Of a stretch of DNA of 64,000 bases, positions 2,321-64,000 are shown piece after piece. The notes below the pieces were generated by a model. It was not told the origin of the DNA, made no database searches, and saw only the letters and a program-made list of their open reading frames with translations. Within the stretch, counting starts at the first letter, position 1. Every line of letters begins with the position of its first letter. Position numbers and translations under genes: made by a program. The DNA comes from Aplysia californica (Eukaryota): positions 373,956 to 437,955 of the forward strand of contig NW_004797398.1 in assembly GCF_000002075.1 (NCBI RefSeq), in the 5' to 3' direction.

Positions 2321-3306
2321 TAGTTAGTTTAGTTGTGGCAGGTGGTCTCTTACTTAGATCTACGGACTGTGCCCTCGACAAGAGGCCGTAAACACGTTTT
2401 GTTTTTCTGCATATTATATCATTTATGTTTTGGGAACTCTGCGCCCCCCCTAAAAATAAATTTTAAAAATAATATTGTTTAAAATCCAGTGCATCATCAT
2501 CATATCCAGTGCCAGATCTGCGGAAGACATCGGCGATCATTCCTTTGTTCGGATGCTTTAAAAAAAAAGCTACAATCCCTGATCTTTCCCCGTTAGAAAA
2601 GACCTTTATCATTATGTGTCTATTCAAGTGTCCCAAAACTGCATTTTTCGTTTCCTGGTTGTTTTTAACAGTGAACGTCCCCGTGGGCTTCATCAAGCAC
2701 TACCTCATTTGATTTCTTTTCCTACCTCGGCATTCTCAGCAGTCTCCTTCGAAGCCACATTCTATTGCTTCTATTCTATTTTCACTGTGTCTTTATTAGT
2801 GGTTACCAAGCATTCACAGTCATAATATATAGGCCTATAGAAGGGGTAACGACCATACATAGCATTTCAGAATTTTAATTTGTGTTGTCATTGAGATGTT
2901 TCTATTTTTTCAGGATAATCCAGTACACAAACAGCTTCTAAATACTTACTCTCTTAGATTATGTACATGTATCACTTCTCGCATGATGACTCATTTTTAC
3001 TTGCATAGAAATGACAGCAAGGATTAGGCCTACTTATATATTATTATATTGAGGCCATAATTTGAGAATAAGATTTCTCACTTCAGTTTTTTTTTAAATT
3101 TAACCAGCAGTCTTTCAAATTCTTTCTTACTTCGCCCACGGTTTCGTCAAGGGTTTGCATACTAGATATCTAGTTATAATGCGATAAATAAAGGTATGCA
3201 CCAATGCTGCTGCAACCATCATTGTTAGTGAAAGATAATTAAAACGAAGGAAACAACAATACGAAAACTCATAAGAAGGCAAAGAGATAACATTGCGACT
3301 CCTCGC

Positions 3307-3325
3307 CACAGAATTCTATTCTGTG
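3307..3325. mobile_element. 19-bp palindromic transposon remnant or footprint with 8-bp TSD
   Basis: CACAGAATTCTATTCTGTG flanked by CTCCTCGC at 3299-3306 and 3326-3333. Confidence 0.75.
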
Positions 3326-3512
3326 CTCCTCGCCCACCACTCAAAGAGCTACTATAAAGGGAAGTGACTCTCAATGGTTATTGTATCAATCAATGGCTTC
3401 GAAGCAGAGCTTCTTCCACGACAGCAGAATTTGAGACTTCATATTCTGTTGTGATTCTTGTTATATTTATTGAAGTTTATAACCTTTTATTTACTTTTGT
3501 GTCGCATCCACA

Positions 3513-6500
3513 ATGGGTTGCATGTGTGGTAAAGAGTCTCTGTCCATAGATGACCGGAGATTTTTCATAAGACAGCGGCTAGGAGAAGGGTTAGTATTTT
3601 ATTTGGCCGGCTGTATTTTCTCCGAACGCTCGGGAAAATAAACTTGAGGGCTGTCGTTATTCTCACCCCCGGGGTGAAAATAAAATTATGGTGAGAATAA
3701 TATCCATTCAGAAAGGAATTCACTTGCCAGAGTAGTAGATCTATGTTTTAAAGAATAATAGCCTTAACTGAAAGCTGTTTAATGAAATAATGTTGATAGT
3801 TTGTCATTGAATTGGCATTTGTTTACAAAGTAACAAAGTACAACACACCAAAAAATGAAAGTGGCTATTCTCACCCGCCCGGAAGTTCTCGCAAGATCAA
3901 CTCCTCCCCTCTTCTCTCTCTCTCTGTCTCTTTCTGAATACTGTCTATCGGTGTGGACGATCAAATTAACCAAAACAAAGTTAAAAAATGATGTTAAAAC
4001 ACAAAAGTAAATTGATTTGGTTGTCTACAAAGATGCTACGGCTATTTAACTTTTCGAATCGAGCCGAACTACGCGGGTCGCCATTTTGTTTTGCCCGGAA
4101 ATTCTCGCGCTACTCCTCTCTCTCTTTCTCTCTCTCTCTCCACTGCCCACAGACAAAATTGTACGCTTTTAGTAGGCTACAGTTGTAATGGAACGTTTGT
4201 TCACGGCACAGAATTCTACAATTTTTCTGTTATCACAGTGCAGAATTCTGTGGTTTAGGGTGAATGCAAAATTTGGTGAACACGCACCGGGTGAGAATAG
4301 CCACAAGACTTGCCTGCACTATTCTCACTCCAGGTGAGAATAGAGGTGGCCCCAAAAAATATGTTTAAATTGCTTTCCCTAGCAGAAGAACCTACGATTA
4401 TTTTTAAGGAACGCAGTGCCTTGACCCTAGGCCTAGGCTAGGCTTATATTTTTTCTTAATTTTGATATTTGTTAAACCATTCAAGAGTAAAATTTTCCAT
4501 TACAGAACTAAAATACACTTAGACTTAAAATAAGTAAAACAAAAGGTAACGCTATTTGGGCAAAAGATAAAGGTTTTCCCCATAATCGACAACATTCGCC
4601 TCCCGCGCTCAAGAGCTGGCCTGCTCGTTGGCGATTTTAGTCACCTCACGCGCTCAGTAGAGTGAGAGAGGGAGGGAGGCGAGTTTTGTCGCCTGGAGCG
4701 CTCAGTGACAGGGGTCCTATGATGCTCGAAACAAAAAAAATGGGTGAGAATAGTAGGCTGTCGTTATTCTCACCCGAGGTTAGAATAATATAAATTTTAT
4801 TCTCACCCCATATTCAGTTTTTATCCTCACCCCGTCATCTATTACTATTCTAGTATAATTACTCTCTACCACTCTCTTTCTTGTCTGGGGTCGCTGTCAC
4901 CCCCTCTAATTAGGCCATATATGCACTTTAATAGTTTTTTATCTAGATCTAGATTCTAGTTCATTGAATAAGAAAAAAGATGACATGAAGCTACAGTGAG
5001 CACCTAGCACACCTCTGTGATTGGCCCAAATATGGATGACGTATTTCCGCCATCTATTTTTGTTGTCTTCAGGGGTTTCCCCCCAAGACTCTTGGGTTTC
5101 CCTCGCGAGTAACTGTTGACTAGATTTCGCCGTCTTTGTCTTTTTAAAAAATTAATTAGTATTATAATATTATTTATTCTTCTAGATATTTACTTTCTCC
5201 TCAAAGTTTTGTACACACACACACACACGCAAGAGCGCGCGCACACACAGCCCAAGCAGTCGGCGATGAAACCTAGTGACGTAGCCCATGATGCGGACCC
5301 GCCACGGTGAGATCTAGTCAACTGACAAGGGAAGCCCTGAAAGACGACAAAAATAGATGGCGGAGATACGTCATCTATATTTGAGCCAATCACAGGGGTG
5401 TGCTAGGCGCTCGCTGCAGCTTCATGTGAAAAGATGGTGTTCTGTCGAGAATCCAGTATACTTTGTAGTGTAGAGTAGAGTGGGCTGTTGCCTTGCCTTG
5501 GCCCTTGGCATTGTAAACTCTGACTCTACTGATCTGTCATAATCAAATTAATTATAGCCACACATAATACAGACTAATATGAATGTCCATCCTATGGTGA
5601 TGTCAAGCAAAAATAGCTTTTAAAATTACTTGTCTTTTCAAAATGATTCAACAATGTCTTCATTTTTCTTGTATAAGCAACAAGTCACAATTTTCCTTGA
5701 TTCTTTACTTTACAGAGGTTTCAGCTACGTTGATTTGGTAGAAGATGCTGTTTCCCACAAGACGTATGCCCTCAAGAGAATTCTTTGTCATTCAAAAGAA
5801 GAAGAGCAGATAGCCCTACAAGAAGTGGAGGTGATGCGGGCAGTAGCTCATCCCAATGTCATCCCACTGGAGTGTCACTCCTTCCATAAAGTCGGGCAAT
5901 ATTCTAAAGCAGTTGATATAACCTGTGAAGTCTTCCTAGTTATACCACTGTATAGGGTAAGTCCTGTGTTTGTCGGTGGGAGTTTTATATTTTTCAGAAT
6001 TTTCGTGTTCAAACTTACTACAAGTATTACTAAATTCCAGTAAAGATGAACAGAGGATGGCTTATTTTTTTGTGTACATTGTTAAGCTTTGACATTTAGG
6101 TCAGGATATTTGGGCAATATTTATATCTATTTAATAGATGCTGCTCTATAGAGTTTTCCAGAGATTAGCAGGGGAATAGATGGTTCAAGATGAACTATGT
6201 TCGTTGTCTTTATTTTGCATCTTTGAGTGCACAAAGTCCAGAATATGGCACTGGTCATTTTTAAGGAATTTTGAAAAATACATATTGCAGTCTAGCAAGG
6301 ACTCATAGCGGAATTGGGATGCGAAAATCTTTTTGTTATGTAGAATTCACACAATGTATGTGTTTTGAATACAAAGAATAATTAAGAATATAATGTGTAA
6401 GAAAAAATTTGAGACCTGAAAATCTGTTCACTAAACTCTATGTGAGGGCTTCATTATTATGTGTGAACAGTGTGTGTTTTTTTGCGTGTGTTTGTTATGT

Positions 6501-47480: not shown

Positions 47481-47861
47481 GATGCAGCCTTGGCACCCAT
47501 ACTATCTTCAGTGGCCTCCGGATAATTTGAGCTTGAGACCACTGGCCCCCTCCTGAGCTACGATATTATTGGCCTACAACAAGAGTTTGAACTAAGGCTG
47601 GCCATTATAATGTAATAATGGAATGACAATTTTGAGACACTTTCATCATTATCTGGTGATTTCAATTAGCTCAATTCATGCCCGACATCGTAATGAGTTT
47701 GATGGGGGGGTTTTTTCAATGAATTTTCATGGCCCAGCCTGTTCTCTATCATCGGAACTGTAGGGCCTCGTGCTCAATGAAATTGAGAGAGGCGTATCAC
47801 TATAATAAGCATTAAAAGGAGCCAAGGCTCGCAGTTGCAAATCTGTTACATGTATTCTGCC

Positions 47862-47894
47862 CACAGAATTCTACACTTAGTGTAGATTTCTGTG
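47862..47894. mobile_element. 33-bp remnant of the same family (16+1+16) with 8-bp TSD
   Basis: CACAGAATTCTACACT-T-AGTGTAGATTTCTGTG flanked by ATTCTGCC at 47854-47861 and 47895-47902. Confidence 0.8.
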
Positions 47895-49519
47895 ATTCTG
47901 CCCTTCTTTCTTTCTTACTGTAGTATTTTTTTGTTTCCATTTAATAGTTAATTTATTTATTTGTTTTTAGTATGTTATCTAGGCCTATTTACTTATATCT
48001 ATATTTTTGTAAAATAACATTTACCGGTAATTAATTTTAAAATTAAAAAACAAAATTATTTACTTTTATTTTAATTAATTAATTAATTTATTAGGAAGGG
48101 GGGGGGGGGGGGTCCACGATTGCCGGATAGCAATAAAAGCGAACTCAGTTTTCGGCACTTGTATAATTGGAGGTTGCAATAGCTGATCATCAGAAACTGC
48201 GAATTGGACCCATATCTTCAAGAAAACTCGTTTTAAAAGCGAATCATTATGATATTGCTATTACTGATTGTTTTTCTTTTGTTTTCATTTCACCCTTTAT
48301 TGCAGGATAAGAGTGTGTACAGTAATGAGTTGTTTATTTAGGCCTACGTGTATTTTTTTAATTTTTCTCCTTTCTTTTTCTTATGTTTTTGTTTATGGTG
48401 ATATAATATGTCAGCGCTTTGGCATGTTCGCTGGCTTTAGTTATTGAAGCACTCTTACAGTTAGAAAGCAATAACACTCTTCCAATTGACAACTTTGTAA
48501 AATATAAAGGATTCAGAAAAAACTATTGGTTCTCTTAGGTTTAGTTTCAGTCTTCATGCGAACGTGTCACTAGACAATTTTAACATGCCTAGTTAATGGA
48601 GCTGATAGAGCATTCTATTCAGCTACCCTGAGAAGCTGCATTCATTCATATTCTAATTTATAGGCCCCTCACATGCATTTTATGAACCTTAAATTTTAAC
48701 CTCTTCTTGGAAACGTATTTTATATTATAGAGACCGGTGAAGAAAATCTGATTGTAATTTTATAGGCTATACTGAGACAAAGTGCAGAAGGCGTATGTTT
48801 TGGCAATAGGCATAAGGATCAGTTGTTGTATGGCCTTTATAGATTATAGACTAATCCTTGGGTAGCCTGCTAAGATGTTAGGAAGAGTTGTTAGTTTTAG
48901 TTTACTCTCACTGTGCTGTGATTTAGTATAAAGTTAAAGTGATAGCCTACAAAACATATTAGTACATGTATTAGGTTCTTTATTTTCGTCTGGCTGTATT
49001 TAAAAAAGTCTAGCTCATTGAGGAATTTACCTATGCCCACGAAACTTTGCTTGGCACATCTGTAGGCCAGCAACCAAACAAAAATATATCTTTAAAAAAT
49101 CTTGACCCAGTAATAAAAACGTTTTTCTCTTTGGGCAGTATATAAAACCCCTCTAAGGATGCATACACAGGATCACTAACTTGCGTCGCGTGCAACAAGA
49201 TTACTTTTTATTTTTACGTTAATTCGAATCGACCTATTAATGCTGGGTTTGAGCTAAAATAGGGTATTGAAATGATTAGGGCTAATTTCAAAAGGTATCT
49301 CAACGTTTTCTGCGAATTATAAAACTTGTGCATACTTTTTTTTTCTTTTTTTTTATATCCGAATCTGAAATTCTGAACCATCCATCCAGGTTTAGATATC
49401 TCGTATGGACCATTATGTCAATGTACTCGTTTTAGAATTTGCTGGAGCTCTTTTTAGTTGAAGGTGAGGCTATCAAAACAGTAAAACACCAACGAAAGCA
49501 TTTCCGGGATTGATTAATC

Positions 49520-49970
49520 ATGGCTGACCCAAAATATGCTAATCTCCCTGGGATTGTAAGTTAATGTCTGTTTTTTACGCTTCTATCATTATTTTACTCT
49601 AAAGGTGGATGGAATTGAAAGAGTCGCTTGTTTTTAATGTATTAGATTCTATGTCTTTAAGGAAGAAAAGACGGAGTTGAGCCATATCATTGCTGTAACT
49701 CCACCAACCTGGCTAAACCGACTTAACGTTGTTTGCGGCATTTGCAGCCCAACTCGGTGGTGTTGTCTGCTGATTATTTTCTCGCTTGCTGGTTTCTTCC
49801 TAACCTCACAACACACTGCACTATCACCGGTTGTATTTATCTAATCTGGATTTCCCAATAAAAGCTATTGGTGTGGGGGAATCTTAAGTTGGTTTGATAA
49901 TGAATACTGGGTATCAGAGTGGGAATCATCAGGGTGATGGATGAATCATCCAGTAGTCAGGGCCAGGAGG

Positions 49971-53000: not shown

Positions 53001-56000
53001 ATATCGGTACTAAATAATGTGATGTTTGGGTGGACTTCTTAGAGCAGGTTTCTCATACTTGCAACTCACACGCCAAAATTAAGCTGGCAAGATGATATTT
53101 TGTAGTCCCTACTTGATGTCAGTTCAGTGAAAATTCTTGTATAAGTGGGTCTTACTTGCTTCATTCCTCAGACAAAATGTGGCTGAGCTATGTATGAGAA
53201 AAAGCGCTGCGAGCTCTTTGGAATCATGGAGTATAAGAAGATAAGAAGCCTATGGTCTGAGGAACTGCTCATTCTCTGAATTCCAGTTAATAAAGACTGA
53301 GAAGATTGGATCAGTTGTATTTTGAAAAAAAAATACTTAACACTTTTTTTTTTTAGTGTGTGTGTATGGAATATTTTATGTTGCAGAGGCTCATCCAGAC
53401 TCTACCCTCAGTTATCCCTAGGTATTTTGAGTTTTAGACCCCTGAGTTTGAGCATTTGCTTGCAATACAGAGGGTTTTAAAAGTCTGTTTGAGAATGTCT
53501 TAGGTTTTTAGGATTTATTTTCCCAAGTTTTTATTATATATATAGGCATGGATCGAAAAGCAGTGTTTTTGCTCTCACATGTCAGATATTGGACATGTGT
53601 GTATGTTTTTGAATGAACGAGCTTTTTGCATCAATTTTTGCAATGCCATACTAGCTAACGGATCAAATATCATTCTTTACAAATTACAGCATTTTCTAAA
53701 TCTTGCTGCTAGGCTTGTACTTTTAACAAAAAAAAGAAGAGGGATCACATTACTCCCATGTTGAGAACATTTCACTGACTCTGTGTGTCAGCTAGAATAT
53801 TATATAAATTGCAATACAAAGCCCTAATATAATAAGCGTGTCAATAACAATGAGCTGCTGCATTAGGTGATTCATGTTTATGTTTCATCTTGACAACTGA
53901 GATCAGAGATCAGTATCTTGAGAGTTCCTAGGCAAGGAGGTTAACAGATCAAAAAACACAAAAAGTAATTTTTAAAGAAAGCTCTTATGATTTGTATAAA
54001 TCTATTCTAGTAAGTCTTTGAAATGTCATGATGAAAAATTTTATTTTGATTATTCTCAGGAGGAATTGTCCAGTCAAAGTGTTGAGCCCATCTCAGTAAG
54101 CACTGATGCAGCATTTAAAGTTTTCAAGGGCAAAGGAGTTGACCTTGGTAAAACAGGTTGGTCTTTCCATATCTTTTCTTTTCCCAAGTTATCACAGTGT
54201 ATCATGAATTGAACACATTTGTTTGCAATTGATTTTGATTCCTCATTAAATGATTGTTTTCATATTGCACATATAGAAGGTATTGTGATTGTAACATTTT
54301 TCATTTCAAATTTTTGGAAACACTGCACTCAGAGAATAAGAGTTTTGCGCGATATAATGTTATTTATAAAATATGTAAATGCTTGTGGTAGACGATTTCT
54401 GTACAAAAGCTTCACAGTGCTCTTAGTCTATTTACTCTCTGATATATTTAATAGCTCGCGTCCCTGTTCATTTCCTTTGCAAAAAGGTTTAAAGCCTTCC
54501 TTTATGAAATATTATCCTTTAAACTTCAAGGAAAAAGTGTAATCAAAATCTCAAGTATACTTTGTTAAAAACACTAATTGAAATCTGAGAAGCTTTGAAT
54601 TATTAGACAAAATTTTTGCAGTTGGCCTGATATTTAGAAGTAGGGTGACATTTATGCTTGACTACTAAAATGTGTATTGTTGTCTTCTTTTCCTTCTTTT
54701 TCTTTTAAGCTTCTGCAATAAAACCCTGTCTCTTGACCTTCTGCCTGCCTGAATTTTTTTGGTTTCAAGCCAGGTTTCTGTGTCTTGTTGTCTCCCTCTT
54801 CCTCTCTTGCCTGCTACCTTTGCAAACCTACCAGTTACTCCGAAAAATCAGAGTTCTCTAATCTTTTATTGCCTACCGGAGAACCCTTGTGAGATTTGCA
54901 TAAAATCTTGTTTTTTCTTGAATTCTGTTTACAAGTCATATGCAAGTGACATAAAAAAAACAGGTTTGTTTCCCATATTTGCATTATTTATTGTGACTGA
55001 TGTAAAAATACTCATTAATATTTTCATTTATTTGCATATGTGAGGTATCGTGGTGAAATCAGGCACTCATCAAAATAATTGAATTGAAGATACTCACAAT
55101 TTTCCCGTTTGGCAATTTTTATCTTTTTTTCTTCTCCTTTTTTTTGTCTTACTGAAACCAGGTGACCCCCACCTCTTTTAATCGCAAGTTTCTAGGCTTC
55201 TATAGATAAATATTTTTTTTCATCAAAAGAAAGATTTAATAAACAAGCTTTAAGATGATACCAATAACTCTACAGGCCCAAAAATCGACGAGCGCCTGAT
55301 TCCACCGCGTCATGACACATATATTTGTGATGCACACATTTATTTGCGATTGTCGCTTCATAATGTAATCTTAATCTTCTTGGGATTTGGTGAGAAAAAC
55401 TTGTAATATTGGTTGTCGAGGGGTTGGCAGGTCTACATTTGCTTTTAGAATGTTTTTCTTGAGTGAATCATAGCATGTGAAATGCCCAAAGTATAACACG
55501 ATGATGTATTCCACAGATTTTTCAGATAGTGTAAGCAAGTCTAGGACCATAGGATACTATGCTGATCAGACAGAGTATGAATTGGTAAGTGTATTACTTT
55601 AATTTTTCAGACCTCTGTGTCTGTCAATATTAATGATTTGAGAAATGAAATTTGGAAATACTTCTACCATGTCAAATATAATGAGTATTGATTTTTTTTA
55701 AAAAGTTGATCATAGTTATGAGAATATGTAAGTCTGGTTTGGCTGTATTAATTTGGTTAAATGATTTTGGAAAAAAGCTGTATATTACTAATGCTTTCAG
55801 AATAATAAGTGTTTAGTGATACATGGAGTTCACTGCTTTTAGAAGTAAGGCTTTTCTTTAAAAAAAAATAATTCATTTTTGTCATCCAGGATATCTTTAT
55901 AACTGAAAAATGAATAATTGATTTTATTACTTTGCACAGCTGGGACAAGGTGACAAGAAAGAGACTGCACAGCAGAAGTATCAGCGACTGCAGCATGAGA

Positions 56001-57309
56001 TGAGGGAATTAGCCGAAGAAGTGGGCAAAATCAAGGTCAGTTCTATTCTTTTATTTTTCATGCTTAGTAATAAATTCTTTTTGCCATAGCAGGATGTAGT
56101 CGAATGTTGCTGTATTGAGTGGAAATGTTTTGTGCCCTTCCCCAATAAACTTCATTTAGATCCATTTGGAGTTTGTCTGCTTTGACCCAGCCCTCTAAGG
56201 TCAACTGTCAACATAAGGTGAGTGGGATGCATCTTTTCAGCAGAAAGCTGGAGGTGATTGAAGAAATAGACTTATTCTTGTTCAATTATGGCAAGCTGTG
56301 TTACACGCTAAAGAGGGGTAGGGGGTCCTGTAGAGACACCTATTCTGCTTGAGTTGTTCAAATGCCTTTATAAAGATAATGAAAAAACCTTCAGTCAGTT
56401 CTTCCTTTCTCGGCTCTTCAACGCTATGGTTAGGGGAAAGACGGACGTCATTGTTACTGTCAGAGGAAAACTGGGAGCCTATTAAGTTATTTTCATACCT
56501 TGTAAAGCAAGTTAAATAGAGTTAAATATCTTTTTTGCAACAATGAAGATATCTATTACTAAAAGAACAGTACTGTTTCATGGTACACTACTTATAACAG
56601 AACCTGAAGTTTTTACAGCACAATTCGAGCTCACCAGGCTTTTCTGCCTTTGAGAGAGATTCACATATATTTGTTGCCGTCACTGCTGTCGCTCCAGATC
56701 TTTTTGTTGTTATCTTGTTGGCATGCAAAAAACCAGAAGGTTGTTTTCCTTTTTTTCAACTCCAGCTGCCTGATGGTAATTTGATACTGTGGAAAGAGTA
56801 CAGTGTACTTAAGTGAAAAATCTTGTCAGTTTGTTAGTCTTTGAGCGCTTAATCAGCTGTTTGCTTTGTATGCTTTCTGGGAAGCTGACATTGTTTCTGA
56901 GTGTTCTGTGGTCTGCTGGCGTGATAATATAGTGTGTAAAGCGCATACAGCTTGCTGTCGAGTGGGGATGTGCGCTATATAATGCTATATATTATCATTA
57001 TTTTTATTATTATTATTGTTATTATTATTAATATTATTATTATTATTATGTTCAAATCTCAAATTTATCACTCCCTTAGGATTCAGTCCAACAAACAGAT
57101 GCGGGCGACTCCCTATCCCCTGTGGCGCTGGGGAAACAGTTGGAGTACCTGCAGCACCAGCTGGCAGACCTGCACTTGGAGAAGCTGCTGGGACCTGAGG
57201 CCAAGGTTGATCTGGCAGATCCCCAGGGAGCCCTGAGACAGTAAGTGCTCAGTAAGAGCTTGCTTTTGAGTTGAGCGGGGGTATGCACTGTACTGTCTAC
57301 AAATTATGC

Positions 57310-60300: not shown

Positions 60301-63181
60301 ATTATTTTGCATACCGACGCTTTACTGAAAACTCAACTTTTTGCATCAGTGTATTTGACCCAGTGTGTATTGAAACAAACGAAAGTGAAAGTGTTTTGTT
60401 TTTTTTATTTGTGAAAGGGAATTTTTTTGCAAAATGTTTTTGATTTTTGTTTTTCTGTCCAATATTCTGTTAACTCAACAGTTCAGAATATTTTTGTTCT
60501 AAATATTGAACTTGAATTTGACGCAAACTTATTTGTAGACTGTCTCTAGTGTATATGTTATGAATTTTATCCATTGTGACATGCAGTGTCAGGCCTGATA
60601 TTTCTCGATAAATTTATAAATGGTTACACTGGTCGATAAAATTCTGAAAATTTTTGGGCTGAGGCTTGTGAAAAGGATTTTCGTATGGAATTTGAGTGGT
60701 AGAATCTGAACCCGGTGTCAGATTTTCTCTATCAGGTCCAAAAATTTAGTACAATGAGTCACTGTTTTTTGTTTCTCCGCTTTGATTTATTTAAACATAA
60801 ACCCCTAAAATCTCACTCACTTTTTGGGCTTAGGCATGTGAATATGATTTTGATATGGAATTTTAGTCGTAGAATTCAAATTTTTCATCAGGTTCTCTCT
60901 GTAAGATCAGGATTTTTTATATGAAATGTCGTATGTTTTGGGGTTTTTTTCCTCTTTGATTCATTTAAACATAGACCCGTAAAATCTCACTCGTATGAGT
61001 TTAAAAAACCACATTGATATGCAGTTACGTTCCATTCCACTGTAATTTGTCCTTTTTTTGTAATGCTCAACATTACAGTTTGTACTTACTTTATCTGCCT
61101 TCAGGCGACTTCTCACCCAGTTAGAGGGCTTTGGTGCTGCGGGGGACAAATCCAAACAGAAAGGAGCTCCTGGTGCTGGAGGGGACAGTGTTGTGTATGA
61201 GCTCTTCTACAAACCGGAGCAAGCGCAGTTTAGCAAGAACGCCAGAGTATGTTTTTGACTGAGTAACTGTTAGTGCAGGTGATGCAGTCTGATTTACCGT
61301 ATCACCTCTCTTACTAGGTTGTCTGAAATGTACAATGTAAGCTTGTGTGAGTTGGACAATGAAACTGATAGTTTACTATTTGTCTTTAAAAAAAATTTCA
61401 GTCTTTTCTTTTGACAGTATTTGAATATATATCTTCGTTTCTGTGAACTTCCTCTTGAATCAGCTGTCCATTTGAGTGACAAGTGCTTCTTTTGTCACTC
61501 TGATGTGTATGGCTACATTTGCTTAAATATATATATATATATGTATGGACATAAACAAATGCAGGCTTCACCTCATGGTATTTGTGCTCCAGAGATGCAT
61601 TTTCTAAATCTTGTGTTAAGTTTGACCAGAAAGTTGTTCAATAATGTGTCTGTTAATAATTTTTAAAAAGCGTCATTATTGTATTGTGTTAGTAGTGTTA
61701 TGGAATTTCTGTGCTCATTAATAATGAGTTTTAGCTCTTCAGTACTAGTGCCAAGTGTGGCTTTCACCCATATTGTTGCCAAAGGTTGAAACAGTAGATA
61801 AGTTTGTAATTATTTAAAACTATTTTTTTGAAAATCTCAACAGCTTGCGAAGCTTGAGGAAAGGCTGGACAGACTTGAAAATGTGATTGGGAAGAATTTT
61901 GATAAAACGGTGAGTTTAATTCTGAAACTATAAATATGCTTATGTGGTTTTGTGTTAACAGATGCATTAGTCTTAATTTACTTAATAGCTGGCTAAGTTT
62001 AAAGAGAAATTTGGTTTGCAAGCTGGTTATTGTCTTATCTGCTAGAAGTATCAATAATACATCCAGAGCTGCAAGAAAAAGAGGAAATTTTGCTGGACAA
62101 TGCAAAATATGTATAGACTAATACCTTCACTTAATCGTATATTTAAGATAGTTCTCAGTAACTGTCCCCTTTCCTTTATCGTACTAAACACTTAATTGAC
62201 ATCTCCCCCAATGGTGCCGAATACAGCAATTTCTCAGTTGATGAGAGTCTTTCTATATGTTGCCCCTTGTATTTCTCCAGCAGACAGACTGTCCACAAAG
62301 GAAGAAAATGTGTTCAGGAAATTAAGATTTTCTACATCCTGAGTACTTCCCATTGCCAGTTTGCTTTGTTTAGCGTTTTTATATTTTTGTTATTTGCAAA
62401 GTTTCCCCATGATTTCTGTTTATACTAAAAAATAATCAAATTCGACACCTGTACTTATATCATTTTCTTTTTTCAGAATGTACTGACTGCGGACACAGAT
62501 AACAAGTCTTTGATTGTAAGTTGAAGTACACAGTTGTGCTTTTTATCCCTCTGAGGAAAAAGTCATGTTCCATCACATATTATTTAAAAACTATGAACAC
62601 ATGAAAACTTTCAAAGAAAAAAAATTCTACGGAACCTGTGTGACTCATTGAACTCAAGTCTGTCCTGATGCCATAGTATGGAGTAGAAGAGGTCACCCCT
62701 TGTACAGATCTCTCTTCAGTGATTTGTTTAGCCTAGACAAATGCTGGTGCCAATTTTTTTTTTTTTAAATGTGTTTATTTTTGTTTACTGACTTGGGGAA
62801 AATAGGAAAGGGAGGGCAGTGTCTTTTAGAGCGCAAAATGCTGGTACTGGTGCAGCCAAGATTGGAACCCTTGTCTAGTTGATTTTTAATCCGGCAGCTT
62901 CACCTTTACGTCTTTTGTAAGTGATATGCATTATTCTCTCGTCATTTTATGTCTTATAATAGCTCATCTACTCAGGCACATCTAAAGATAAAAATCATTG
63001 ACCTCAGAAATATTTATTCTCATAGGGTTCTGTGGCAGCCCTGAACTCAAAGCTGTCACTGCTGGATGCTTCCAACACTGAGACTGTTGAAGCCAGACTT
63101 AACGCTGTCCTACAAAAAATGCAACAAATTGCCGAAAAGAAAGAAAAGGAACCACAGGCTGATCCAGATAAACAGAAAAGG
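49520..63181 (+). CDS. DCTN2: Dynactin subunit 2 (p50 dynamitin), 5' part; continues beyond the window
   Basis: Exons 49520-49555 (MADPKYANLPGI), 52900-52971 (PDVFESSDLPEDDQ), 54060-54156, 55517-55584, 55940-56035 (ETAQQKYQRLQHE), 57080-57240 or its duplicate 60057-60217, 61105-61246 (YELFYKPEQ), 61844-61909, 62477-62515, 63026-63181. All GT-AG and in frame when only one copy of exon 6 is used. Confidence 0.96.
53620..53815 (+). mobile_element. Decayed L2/CR1-group LINE RT C-terminal fragment
   Basis: FCNAIL..KLQHFLNLAARLV..IT resembles the L2 LQxVQNxAARLV..HITP motif. Confidence 0.6.
56933..57050 (+). mobile_element. L2-type retroposon 3' tail with (ATT)n; duplicated at 59904-60025
   Basis: TGTAAAGCGC..GCGCTATATAA followed by (ATT)n. 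Confidence 0.6.
58846..58945. other. Assembly gap (100 N, placeholder size)
   Basis: Run of exactly 100 N between the two duplicated copies. Confidence 1.
59435..59614 (+). mobile_element. 180-bp retroposon 3' fragment with 13-bp TSD, present in only one duplicate copy
   Basis: TSD CTGCCTTTGAGAG at 59422-59434 and 59615-59627; the empty site is visible at about 56644-56656; same 3' hairpin and tail family as 18052-18447. Confidence 0.9.
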
Positions 63182-64000
63182 GTATGTAAAATGAAGTCTG
63201 TATTTTGTAGAAGAGGATGATGCATCTGTGAATAAAGCTGTTTCTGTTAAAGTTTCAAATCTAATTTAGTCCTGTATTTGTAGCCAAAGTACTTCTCACG
63301 GCGTCACTTTTCGCCCGATTCTGTTACTTTTAGTTCGCGTGACTCAGCAGCCCGCCGGAGCTCCCCGGCTCAGGGTCACGGGGTTAATGAGCCCTGAGGC
63401 GACTTTGCCGGTGTCGGTTAGGAAGTTTGCATTTTTGACTATGTTTAAAACGATATAACTTCTTCCCCATCCCACACAGCAAACCATTACGCAGATGTAC
63501 TAAAAGCTCAATGTCTAGAGATTTATTCTGCGTTAGAATGGTTAATTTCTGTGCCTTAGTTTTTGTTCTAGGCAAGTCTTTGTAGAGTACCCAATTTGTC
63601 CTATTCTAGTTACAAACTTATGAATAAATGATTGTTAATTTAAAAAAGGCACGACAGATCTCTCCAAAATCTGTGTTAAACTGACTATGAATATCATGTC
63701 TTTTACCATGAGAAATCTTAAATCTGCGCTAGTAGAAATAGTCAAGTTATAAGAGGATAAAGATGCACATCTGCATTTTTTAACTAAAGATGATCAGCGT
63801 TAGCTCTTATTTTACTATTAAACAAGAGAAAGTTACTCTGCGTTTGTTCATGAATCATGCTGTGTCTGTGGCAGCCTGCATACAACTAAAAAGATATAAT
63901 ATAGAATCTAAGCAATTAAAAAAACCACAAAACCGTGTAAATACATGGGTAGAGATAAACTTCTTGTATGGAATAAAAATAATGACAGCTAACACATTCA

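Follow-up and report, generated by a model that had tools for sequence, protein, structure and literature searches.

The window, by which we mean the whole 64,000-nucleotide stretch of Aplysia californica DNA analysed here, contains a 33-bp palindrome upstream of a DCTN2-like gene (Table 1). An earlier note, made from the letters of this DNA alone, had described the palindrome as two 16-nt inverted ends around a central T, with one mismatch, between perfect 8-bp direct repeats and about 1.6 kb upstream of the DCTN2 ATG. We found the sequence at 47862-47894 to be as described, with the single mismatch in the right arm. The position relative to the gene holds as well, with the start of the DCTN2-like exon (49520) lying 1.63 kb downstream of the palindrome and exons matching the Dynamitin profile (PF04912) following further on, at window positions 55943-56041 and 63029-63187. 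The arms of the palindrome correspond to the outermost 16-18 nt of the 23-nt terminal inverted repeat (TIR) of a transposon family, and the junction can be parsed as a tail of 18 nt that meets 16 nt of the opposite tail, with T at the centre; the mismatch in the right arm is a substitution that followed the formation of the scar.

Table 1. Features of the window, in window positions (TSD, target-site duplication)
Feature	Position	Strand	Remark
Second probable scar: TSD CTCCTCGC, 19-bp junction, TSD	3299..3333	.	read from the sequence
MITE-like host repeat of the 46-bp form, ~495 bp	3857..4351	+	copies 96-98% identical
46-bp form: 14-nt arm, 16-nt filler, 16-nt arm	4207..4252	.	shared flanks
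Left 8-bp TSD ATTCTGCC	47854..47861	.	same letters as 47895-47902
33-bp palindrome, probable excision scar	47862..47894	.	commonest junction form of the family
Right 8-bp TSD ATTCTGCC	47895..47902	.	same letters as 47854-47861
DCTN2-like gene, first coding exon MADPKYANLPGI (landmark)	49520..49555	+	exon end approximate

The same terminus had been reported to occur twice more in the window. Both occurrences exist, at 3307-3325 and 4207-4252, but the latter has to be discounted as a separate event: the 46-bp form at 4207-4252 does not represent an independent excision, because its flanks are identical wherever it was sampled and it is part of a ~495-bp repeat. This form begins 350 bp into the MITE-like repeat and its flanks are alike at all loci sampled, while in one subfamily (L051/L052) the TSD is kept at 7/8 bases (GTTCACGG/GTTCAGGG). 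It looks like a single old scar that was fixed in the MITE master copy and then passively amplified. The terminal inverted repeats of the MITE-like repeat itself are imperfect (…GTGGCTATTCTCACCCG / CGGGTGAGAATAGAGGTGGCC), duplications of 8-9 bp flank it, and it is probably present in well over a thousand copies, a figure obtained by subtraction from the count of the 13-mer terminus.

The 19-bp junction at 3307-3325 consists of a 12-nt arm and a 7-8-nt arm and is enclosed by perfect 8-bp copies of CTCCTCGC (3299-3306 and 3326-3333); an identical 19-bp copy is found elsewhere in the genome (G000:C22:2432632). The scar lies ~190 bp upstream of an ATG at ~3515 (ORF MGCMCGKES...), with a TATAAAG ~30 bp downstream of it, a promoter-proximal position. 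The frame opened by this ATG, MGCMCGKESLSIDDRRFFIRQRLGEG, resembles the N-terminus of a myristoylated kinase and is a candidate of that kind only.

We found that the 13-nt terminus has 5920 matches in the 927,310,431-bp assembly, compared to 16 for the reversed control (all genome patterns were exact-match searches, mismatches not being allowed). The full TIR is 23 nt long (CACAGAATTCTACACTTATAGAA). Five long elements of 1.3-3.0 kb that were fetched from the genome carry this TIR and have perfect 8-bp TSDs in 5/5 cases; they are 91-97% identical to one another and have no long reading frames. The 2.7-3 kb copies are non-coding, because tblastn found no remnants of P-type proteins in them. Furthermore, the 5′ end of the family is represented by at least 340 candidate copies in the genome, and perfect 23-nt termini occur 425 times genome-wide, mostly in pairs 1.2-4.1 kb apart (as seen among 100 listed matches of the 425), with internally deleted copies of 1.2-1.8 kb also present. 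Tandem units of ~200 bp with 80-83% identity were observed within the non-autonomous copies (L031:1452-2058), and short arrays of the (TAGATC)n type occur both in a non-autonomous copy (L031:2790-2835) and in intron 1 of the autonomous element on C986 described below. A literature search for the terminus sequence returned no paper.

Short palindromes made of two TIR ends, which we refer to as scars, are widespread. A pattern consisting of a 12-nt arm, 0-21 nt and a second 12-nt arm, with the paired arms within 45 bp, was found at 817 sites in the genome and at 0 sites for the control pattern, a difference that chance does not explain. About one third of these palindromes lie within the ~495-bp MITE and the remainder in unique DNA, among the matches listed: 18 of the 50 listed (817 in total) are 41-45-bp derivatives of the MITE-borne form and 32 lie in unique DNA. 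The lengths of these 32 are dominated by the 33-bp form (20 sites), followed by 30 bp and 39 bp (three sites each), 34 bp and 36 bp (two each), and 27 bp and 42 bp (one each). The frequency of TSDs, which the earlier note had named as a check, is high, with nearly all sampled scars having a perfect duplication or one that is a single base off. Among sampled unique-DNA scars with arms of at least 12 nt, a perfect 8-bp TSD flanks 17/21, three match at 7/8 bases and one at 6/8, this lone case sitting in a poly-G tract. The first unique-DNA sample gave 8/11 perfect TSDs and 3/11 with 7/8 bases, and the filler and long-arm forms have a perfect TSD in 9/10 cases.

A pattern with 7-nt arms yielded 218 sites versus 201 for its control and is overall not above it. 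Of the 50 matches listed in this 218-site search, however, 34 are one self-complementary 14-mer (CACAGAATTCTGTG), for which an estimate from base composition predicts ~4 copies by chance. Perfect TSDs flank 5/10 of the 14-mers sampled, and one more has a TSD matching at 7/8 bases. At one of these loci (L073), TSD, 14-bp scar and TSD correspond to a 22-bp insertion in a copy of an unrelated repeat, and this 22-bp insertion is missing from two paralogous copies of the repeat, which is a direct empty-site comparison for the 14-bp scar. Elsewhere (G000:C12:2779341-2780146, L087 and L088), two 14-bp palindromes lie ~790 bp apart with GAATAACA as the outer flank of both; the pair resembles an 806-bp unit bounded by the 14-mer within a TSD, and may be a derivative with ends rebuilt from scars.

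The amount of TIR retained in the scars is sharply limited. Arm matches reaching 18 nt number 548 and those reaching 19 nt number 18, which is a 30-fold drop, and arm length peaks at 16-18 nt with a hard ceiling at 18 nt, in line with the peak at about 15-17 nt that had been put forward as a test. Most of the 18 matches of 19 nt or more have base 19 alone in common, a base that can come from filler by chance, and arms of 20-35 nt are kept at about six sites, among them sites on C81, C738, C83, C133 and C161. In scars with filler (18+3+18, 18+6+18, 18+1+17 and 17+4+18; five scars, parsed by hand) the arm ends exactly at nt 18 in 8/10 cases. Nucleotides 17-20 of the TIR read TATA, a 4-nt palindrome and an excellent potential microhomology, and no 36-bp product of a TATA junction was found among the matches with arms of 19 nt or more. 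Because this 36-bp product is missing, the single-stranded tails would have ended short of nt 19-20. The simplest reading is an 18-nt tail on each donor flank, and from the scars we infer a transposase cut that would be staggered by 18 nt, close to the 17 nt of the fruit-fly P element. The cut geometry originally proposed, a P-type stagger of 17 nt, therefore stands in its essential part, the long stagger that leaves TIR arms behind, and needs correction in its length, the retained tail being 18 and not 17 nt.

The listed sites with an 18-nt arm, 86 in number, are made up to ~63% of the 33-bp form (54 sites), and 11 are a perfect 34-bp palindrome. The 33-bp product thus outnumbers the 34-bp product by ~5:1, even though the 2-nt overlap behind the 34-bp product is a perfect one, a dominance that is not fully explained and for which we have no first-principles reason. 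Relative to the flanks, the centre base of the 33-bp form is T or A, in similar numbers.

The parent of the family was found at G000:C986:103647-108601 (minus strand), a 4955-bp element with the 23-nt TIR at both ends. The TIR was not found within 1.5 kb of 27 Tnp_P_element loci, and was reached by extending one such locus (L056) 700 bp further upstream; two apparent TIR matches near Tnp_P_element loci proved to be coding sequence. When compared with the non-autonomous copy L033, the ends of the parent are identical at 80/80 (5′) and 77/80 (3′) terminal nucleotides. Diverged similarity to the non-autonomous copies covers ~300 bp of the parent at its 5′ end and, in the final 0.8 kb at the 3′ end, two blocks of ~170 and ~190 bp.

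The first exon of the parent, as read from its sequence, starts with an ATG 254 bp from the 5′ tip and has 24 codons (MVLNCCVFGCSN...) that include the C-x2-C of a THAP domain. It stops at a GTAAGT donor, which is followed by an intron of ~1 kb and then by an open frame of 855 codons. For domain and protein searches we used a 739-aa part of this 855-codon frame (exon 2), leaving the exons unjoined. With this query, the THAP (PF05485, 9.6e-12), Tnp_P_element (PF12017, 7.9e-21), TNP-like RNase H N- and C-terminal and GTP-binding insertion domains all scored over their cut-offs (remaining profiles PF21787, 4e-45; PF21788, 2.1e-39; PF21789, 1.4e-17). The protein matches the Drosophila P transposase structure 6p5a (E 7.3e-28), and the residues aligned to D230, D303 and E531, the catalytic triad of the P transposase (PMC8230255), are D, D and E. 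A language-model search likewise placed it among THAP9/P-transposase clusters, and no hAT domain was found in the protein at E <= 0.01. The earlier note had suggested looking for full-length elements with the same termini and asking which transposase they encode; this parent has those termini and encodes a THAP + Tnp_P_element transposase, not a hAT transposase.

The C986 element is the sole intact copy, the rest of its lineage consisting of fragments with 70-94% identity. It has no TSD (flanks GGAAAGAC versus GGTTCGCC), and these unlike flanks point to a rearrangement of the flanks or to recombination of two copies. Its 5′ untranslated region (L101) contains, ~150 bp inside the 5′ end, a 22-bp nested scar that belongs to its own family and is flanked by a perfect TSD (GTCACGAG), which means that the element received a self-insertion that was then excised. 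The transposase domains and triad, the shared termini, the 8-bp TSD, the tailed scars and a 14-bp target motif, all of which were found for the family, place the parent in the P superfamily as a new member, possibly still competent. More broadly, the P-like complement of this genome is diverse, with at least 10 lineages at 25-47% protein identity, several of which (C820, C209, C20 and C167) have uninterrupted frames of 750-890 codons; for two P-like lineages the predicted 5′ termini are CAGTTTGAAAGCATCC and CAGAGAGCTTAGAATTACC. A search for scars of two other P-like families, both low-copy and with termini deduced from one end (CAGAGAGCTTAG... and CAGTTTGAAAGC...), was meant as a positive control and gave 0 sites, a result that says little at such copy numbers and with such ends.

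The target preference of the family was derived from 29 different TSDs, all of them perfect, which were taken with six bases of flank per side and symmetrised to 58 half-sites. The base three positions outside the TSD is T in 45/58 half-sites, and the first base of the TSD is G in 34/58 and T in just 1. The preferred target is accordingly a 14-bp palindrome, T-n-n-[G-n6-C]-n-n-A, with most information at the outer positions. The Drosophila P element likewise prefers a target of 14 bp that is palindromic about the TSD; the TSD begins with G and ends with C, and the outer two positions, A...T in the fly, are the most informative (PMC2577343). The two preferences therefore share the palindrome, the TSD ends and the weight of the outer positions, and differ in the outer bases, which are T...A here.

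Taken together, these results make it very probable that the 33-bp palindrome is a scar left at the donor site by a DNA transposon of the P superfamily. Under this hypothesis, an element with the 23-nt TIR would insert and duplicate 8 bp of its target, and the transposase would later cut the 3′ strand at the tip of the element and the opposite strand 18 nt into the TIR, so that each flank would keep 18 nt of the TIR as a single-stranded 3′ tail. The scar would then result from end joining of these two identical, non-complementary tails. If the tips (...CTTA) were aligned over TA, a 34-bp product would be formed, while alignment over TTA, with a central T-T mismatch, would lead to the 33-bp product with T or A at its centre, a route that would be equivalent to a 1-nt microhomology once 2 nt had been trimmed. 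Annealing within the tails of the self-complementary octamer AGAATTCT (TIR nt 4-11) would generate the 14-bp scar, and 1-6 nt of partly templated filler joining two 17-18-nt arms the scars of 36-42 bp. That the tails are 3′ tails is an assumption by analogy. The family, its TSDs, the spectrum of its scars, the 18-nt limit and the P-type transposase of the parent are direct observations, and the strand chemistry, the repair pathway and the germ-line timing are inferred. The earlier note had already taken such sites for scars of a P/THAP9-type transposon that had inserted and excised; the arm limit, the TSDs and the transposase of the parent all agree with this, and its mechanism is supported, the type being correct and the number of nucleotides nearly so.

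The 33-bp palindrome could instead be a mobilised micro-MITE, that is, one scar cut and pasted repeatedly by the same transposase. A single 33-bp sequence at ~63% of the listed sites with an 18-nt arm would fit this explanation, as would a separate 8-bp TSD at each copy and the unexplained excess of the 33-bp over the 34-bp form. However, a 33-bp unit could not move as a duplex, because with an 18-nt stagger at both ends it would have no double-stranded core, as would be true of any unit below 36 bp after two such cuts, and mobility of the Drosophila P element requires more than 100 bp of each end. The similar numbers of T and A at the centre are, moreover, what a resolved T-T mismatch predicts, and about one third of the junctions among the matches listed are of other kinds (14, 19-31 and 34-45 bp) with differences confined to the junction, as end joining would produce and divergence among copies would not. 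Part of the 33-bp copies could have arisen by re-mobilisation, and we regard this explanation as a whole as very improbable. Identical internal sequence across many loci, which had been named in advance as the mark of a micro-MITE, applies to the 46-bp form alone, and there it appears to reflect passive copying within another repeat.

Alternatively, the palindromes could be internal deletions of full elements, produced by abortive gap repair from a sister copy, by replication slippage or by cruciform (hairpin) processing between the TIRs, in which case arm length would mirror microhomology and not the cut site of the transposase. P elements are well known to undergo abortive gap repair that is completed by end joining (PMC2895639), deleted copies of 1.2-1.8 kb do exist in this family, and a few sites have arms of 20-35 nt. 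Under such a process, arm lengths should be widely spread and the best microhomologies should be used; in fact, arm matches drop 30-fold from 18 to 19 nt, the junction at TATA (nt 17-20) is missing and scars containing filler stop at nt 18 on both sides. We therefore consider internal deletion a very improbable source of the scars at large, and one that may account for the handful of longer-armed sites. Still less probable, to the point of carrying almost no weight, is that the family is of the hAT type, or of some other superfamily that makes 8-bp TSDs, and that the palindromes are unrelated to P-type chemistry. An 8-bp TSD alone cannot separate hAT from P, and animal genomes generally contain more hAT elements. 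The hAT alternative is nevertheless refuted, because the parent with the same termini, the sole coding element that has them, encodes a complete P/THAP9-type transposase in which the DDE triad is kept. The target motif spans 14 bp as in P, and the scars retain 7-18 nt of each TIR, whereas hAT excision proceeds via flank hairpins and leaves no TIR arms.

Excision scars of a P-superfamily transposon, the reading we prefer, can be compared with what has been described for the fly element. Excision of the Drosophila P element produces 17-nt non-complementary 3′ tails (Beall and Rio 1997, as cited in PMC7776569). Repair junctions of P{wa} show short microhomology at the tips, long imperfect microhomology, or partly templated insertions of 1-15 nt, which sit between near-complete tails (PMC2895639, Table 1), and the Aplysia scars fall in the same three junction classes. 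The likeness extends to the 8-bp TSD, the TIR that begins with CA, the long TIR tails held by the donor flanks, and a protein with THAP, HTH, split RNase H and GTP-binding insertion domains and the DDE triad. In contrast to the fly element, the tail is 18 nt (as deduced from the scars) instead of 17, the TIR is 23 nt instead of 31 and unrelated in sequence, and the gene of the parent has a ~1-kb intron within its THAP domain. Furthermore, the host is a gastropod and not an insect, and the record is natural and genome-wide, with hundreds of fixed scars, where that of the fly is experimental.

Zebrafish Pdre2/zfTHAP9 and human THAP9 are likewise P-superfamily members outside insects and are similar in transposase architecture, 8-bp TSDs and short TIRs, the TIR of Pdre2 being 13 bp (PMC10983969, PMC8230255). 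Excision by zfTHAP9 results in larger flanking deletions, with no stagger mapped (PMC10983969), whereas in the Aplysia family the stagger is readable from the scars. Compared with these vertebrate homologues, the Aplysia family has hundreds of non-autonomous copies and one autonomous copy that is complete in its domains. A similar partnership is known from the Drosophila repleta group, where the BuT5 MITE is mobilised by a divergent P-element master (PMC3698922). In both cases an autonomous P element moves a far more numerous non-coding partner that shares its ends only, and the Aplysia pair differs in host phylum and in sequence.

To our knowledge, the geometry of P-type cleavage has been measured only for the fly enzyme. 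The hundreds of natural scars in Aplysia are an independent readout, at the level of nucleotides, for a distant relative, and they indicate conservation of both the long tail (with its 3′ polarity by analogy) and the 14-bp geometry of the target. The repair in an animal germ line of breaks that have long, non-complementary tails is documented by them as well, the repair classes appearing to resemble those of polymerase-theta-type end joining in flies. As palindromes of 14-45 bp, such scars are missed by repeat annotation, lie close to genes and may be multiplied within other repeats, one of them having probably reached thousands of copies in this way inside the MITE. Collectively, they are an unusually clean record, left by nature, of how P-type cleavage and repair proceed outside insects. 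On balance, we lean towards the view that the long staggered cut, hitherto regarded as peculiar to the Drosophila P element, is an old and conserved property of P/THAP9 transposases that fixed scars in a genome sequence suffice to reveal with nucleotide precision, at 18 nt in this family, and that the autonomous copy, with its intact TIRs and DDE triad, may still be active. If it is, Aplysia would offer a second natural P system for experiment.
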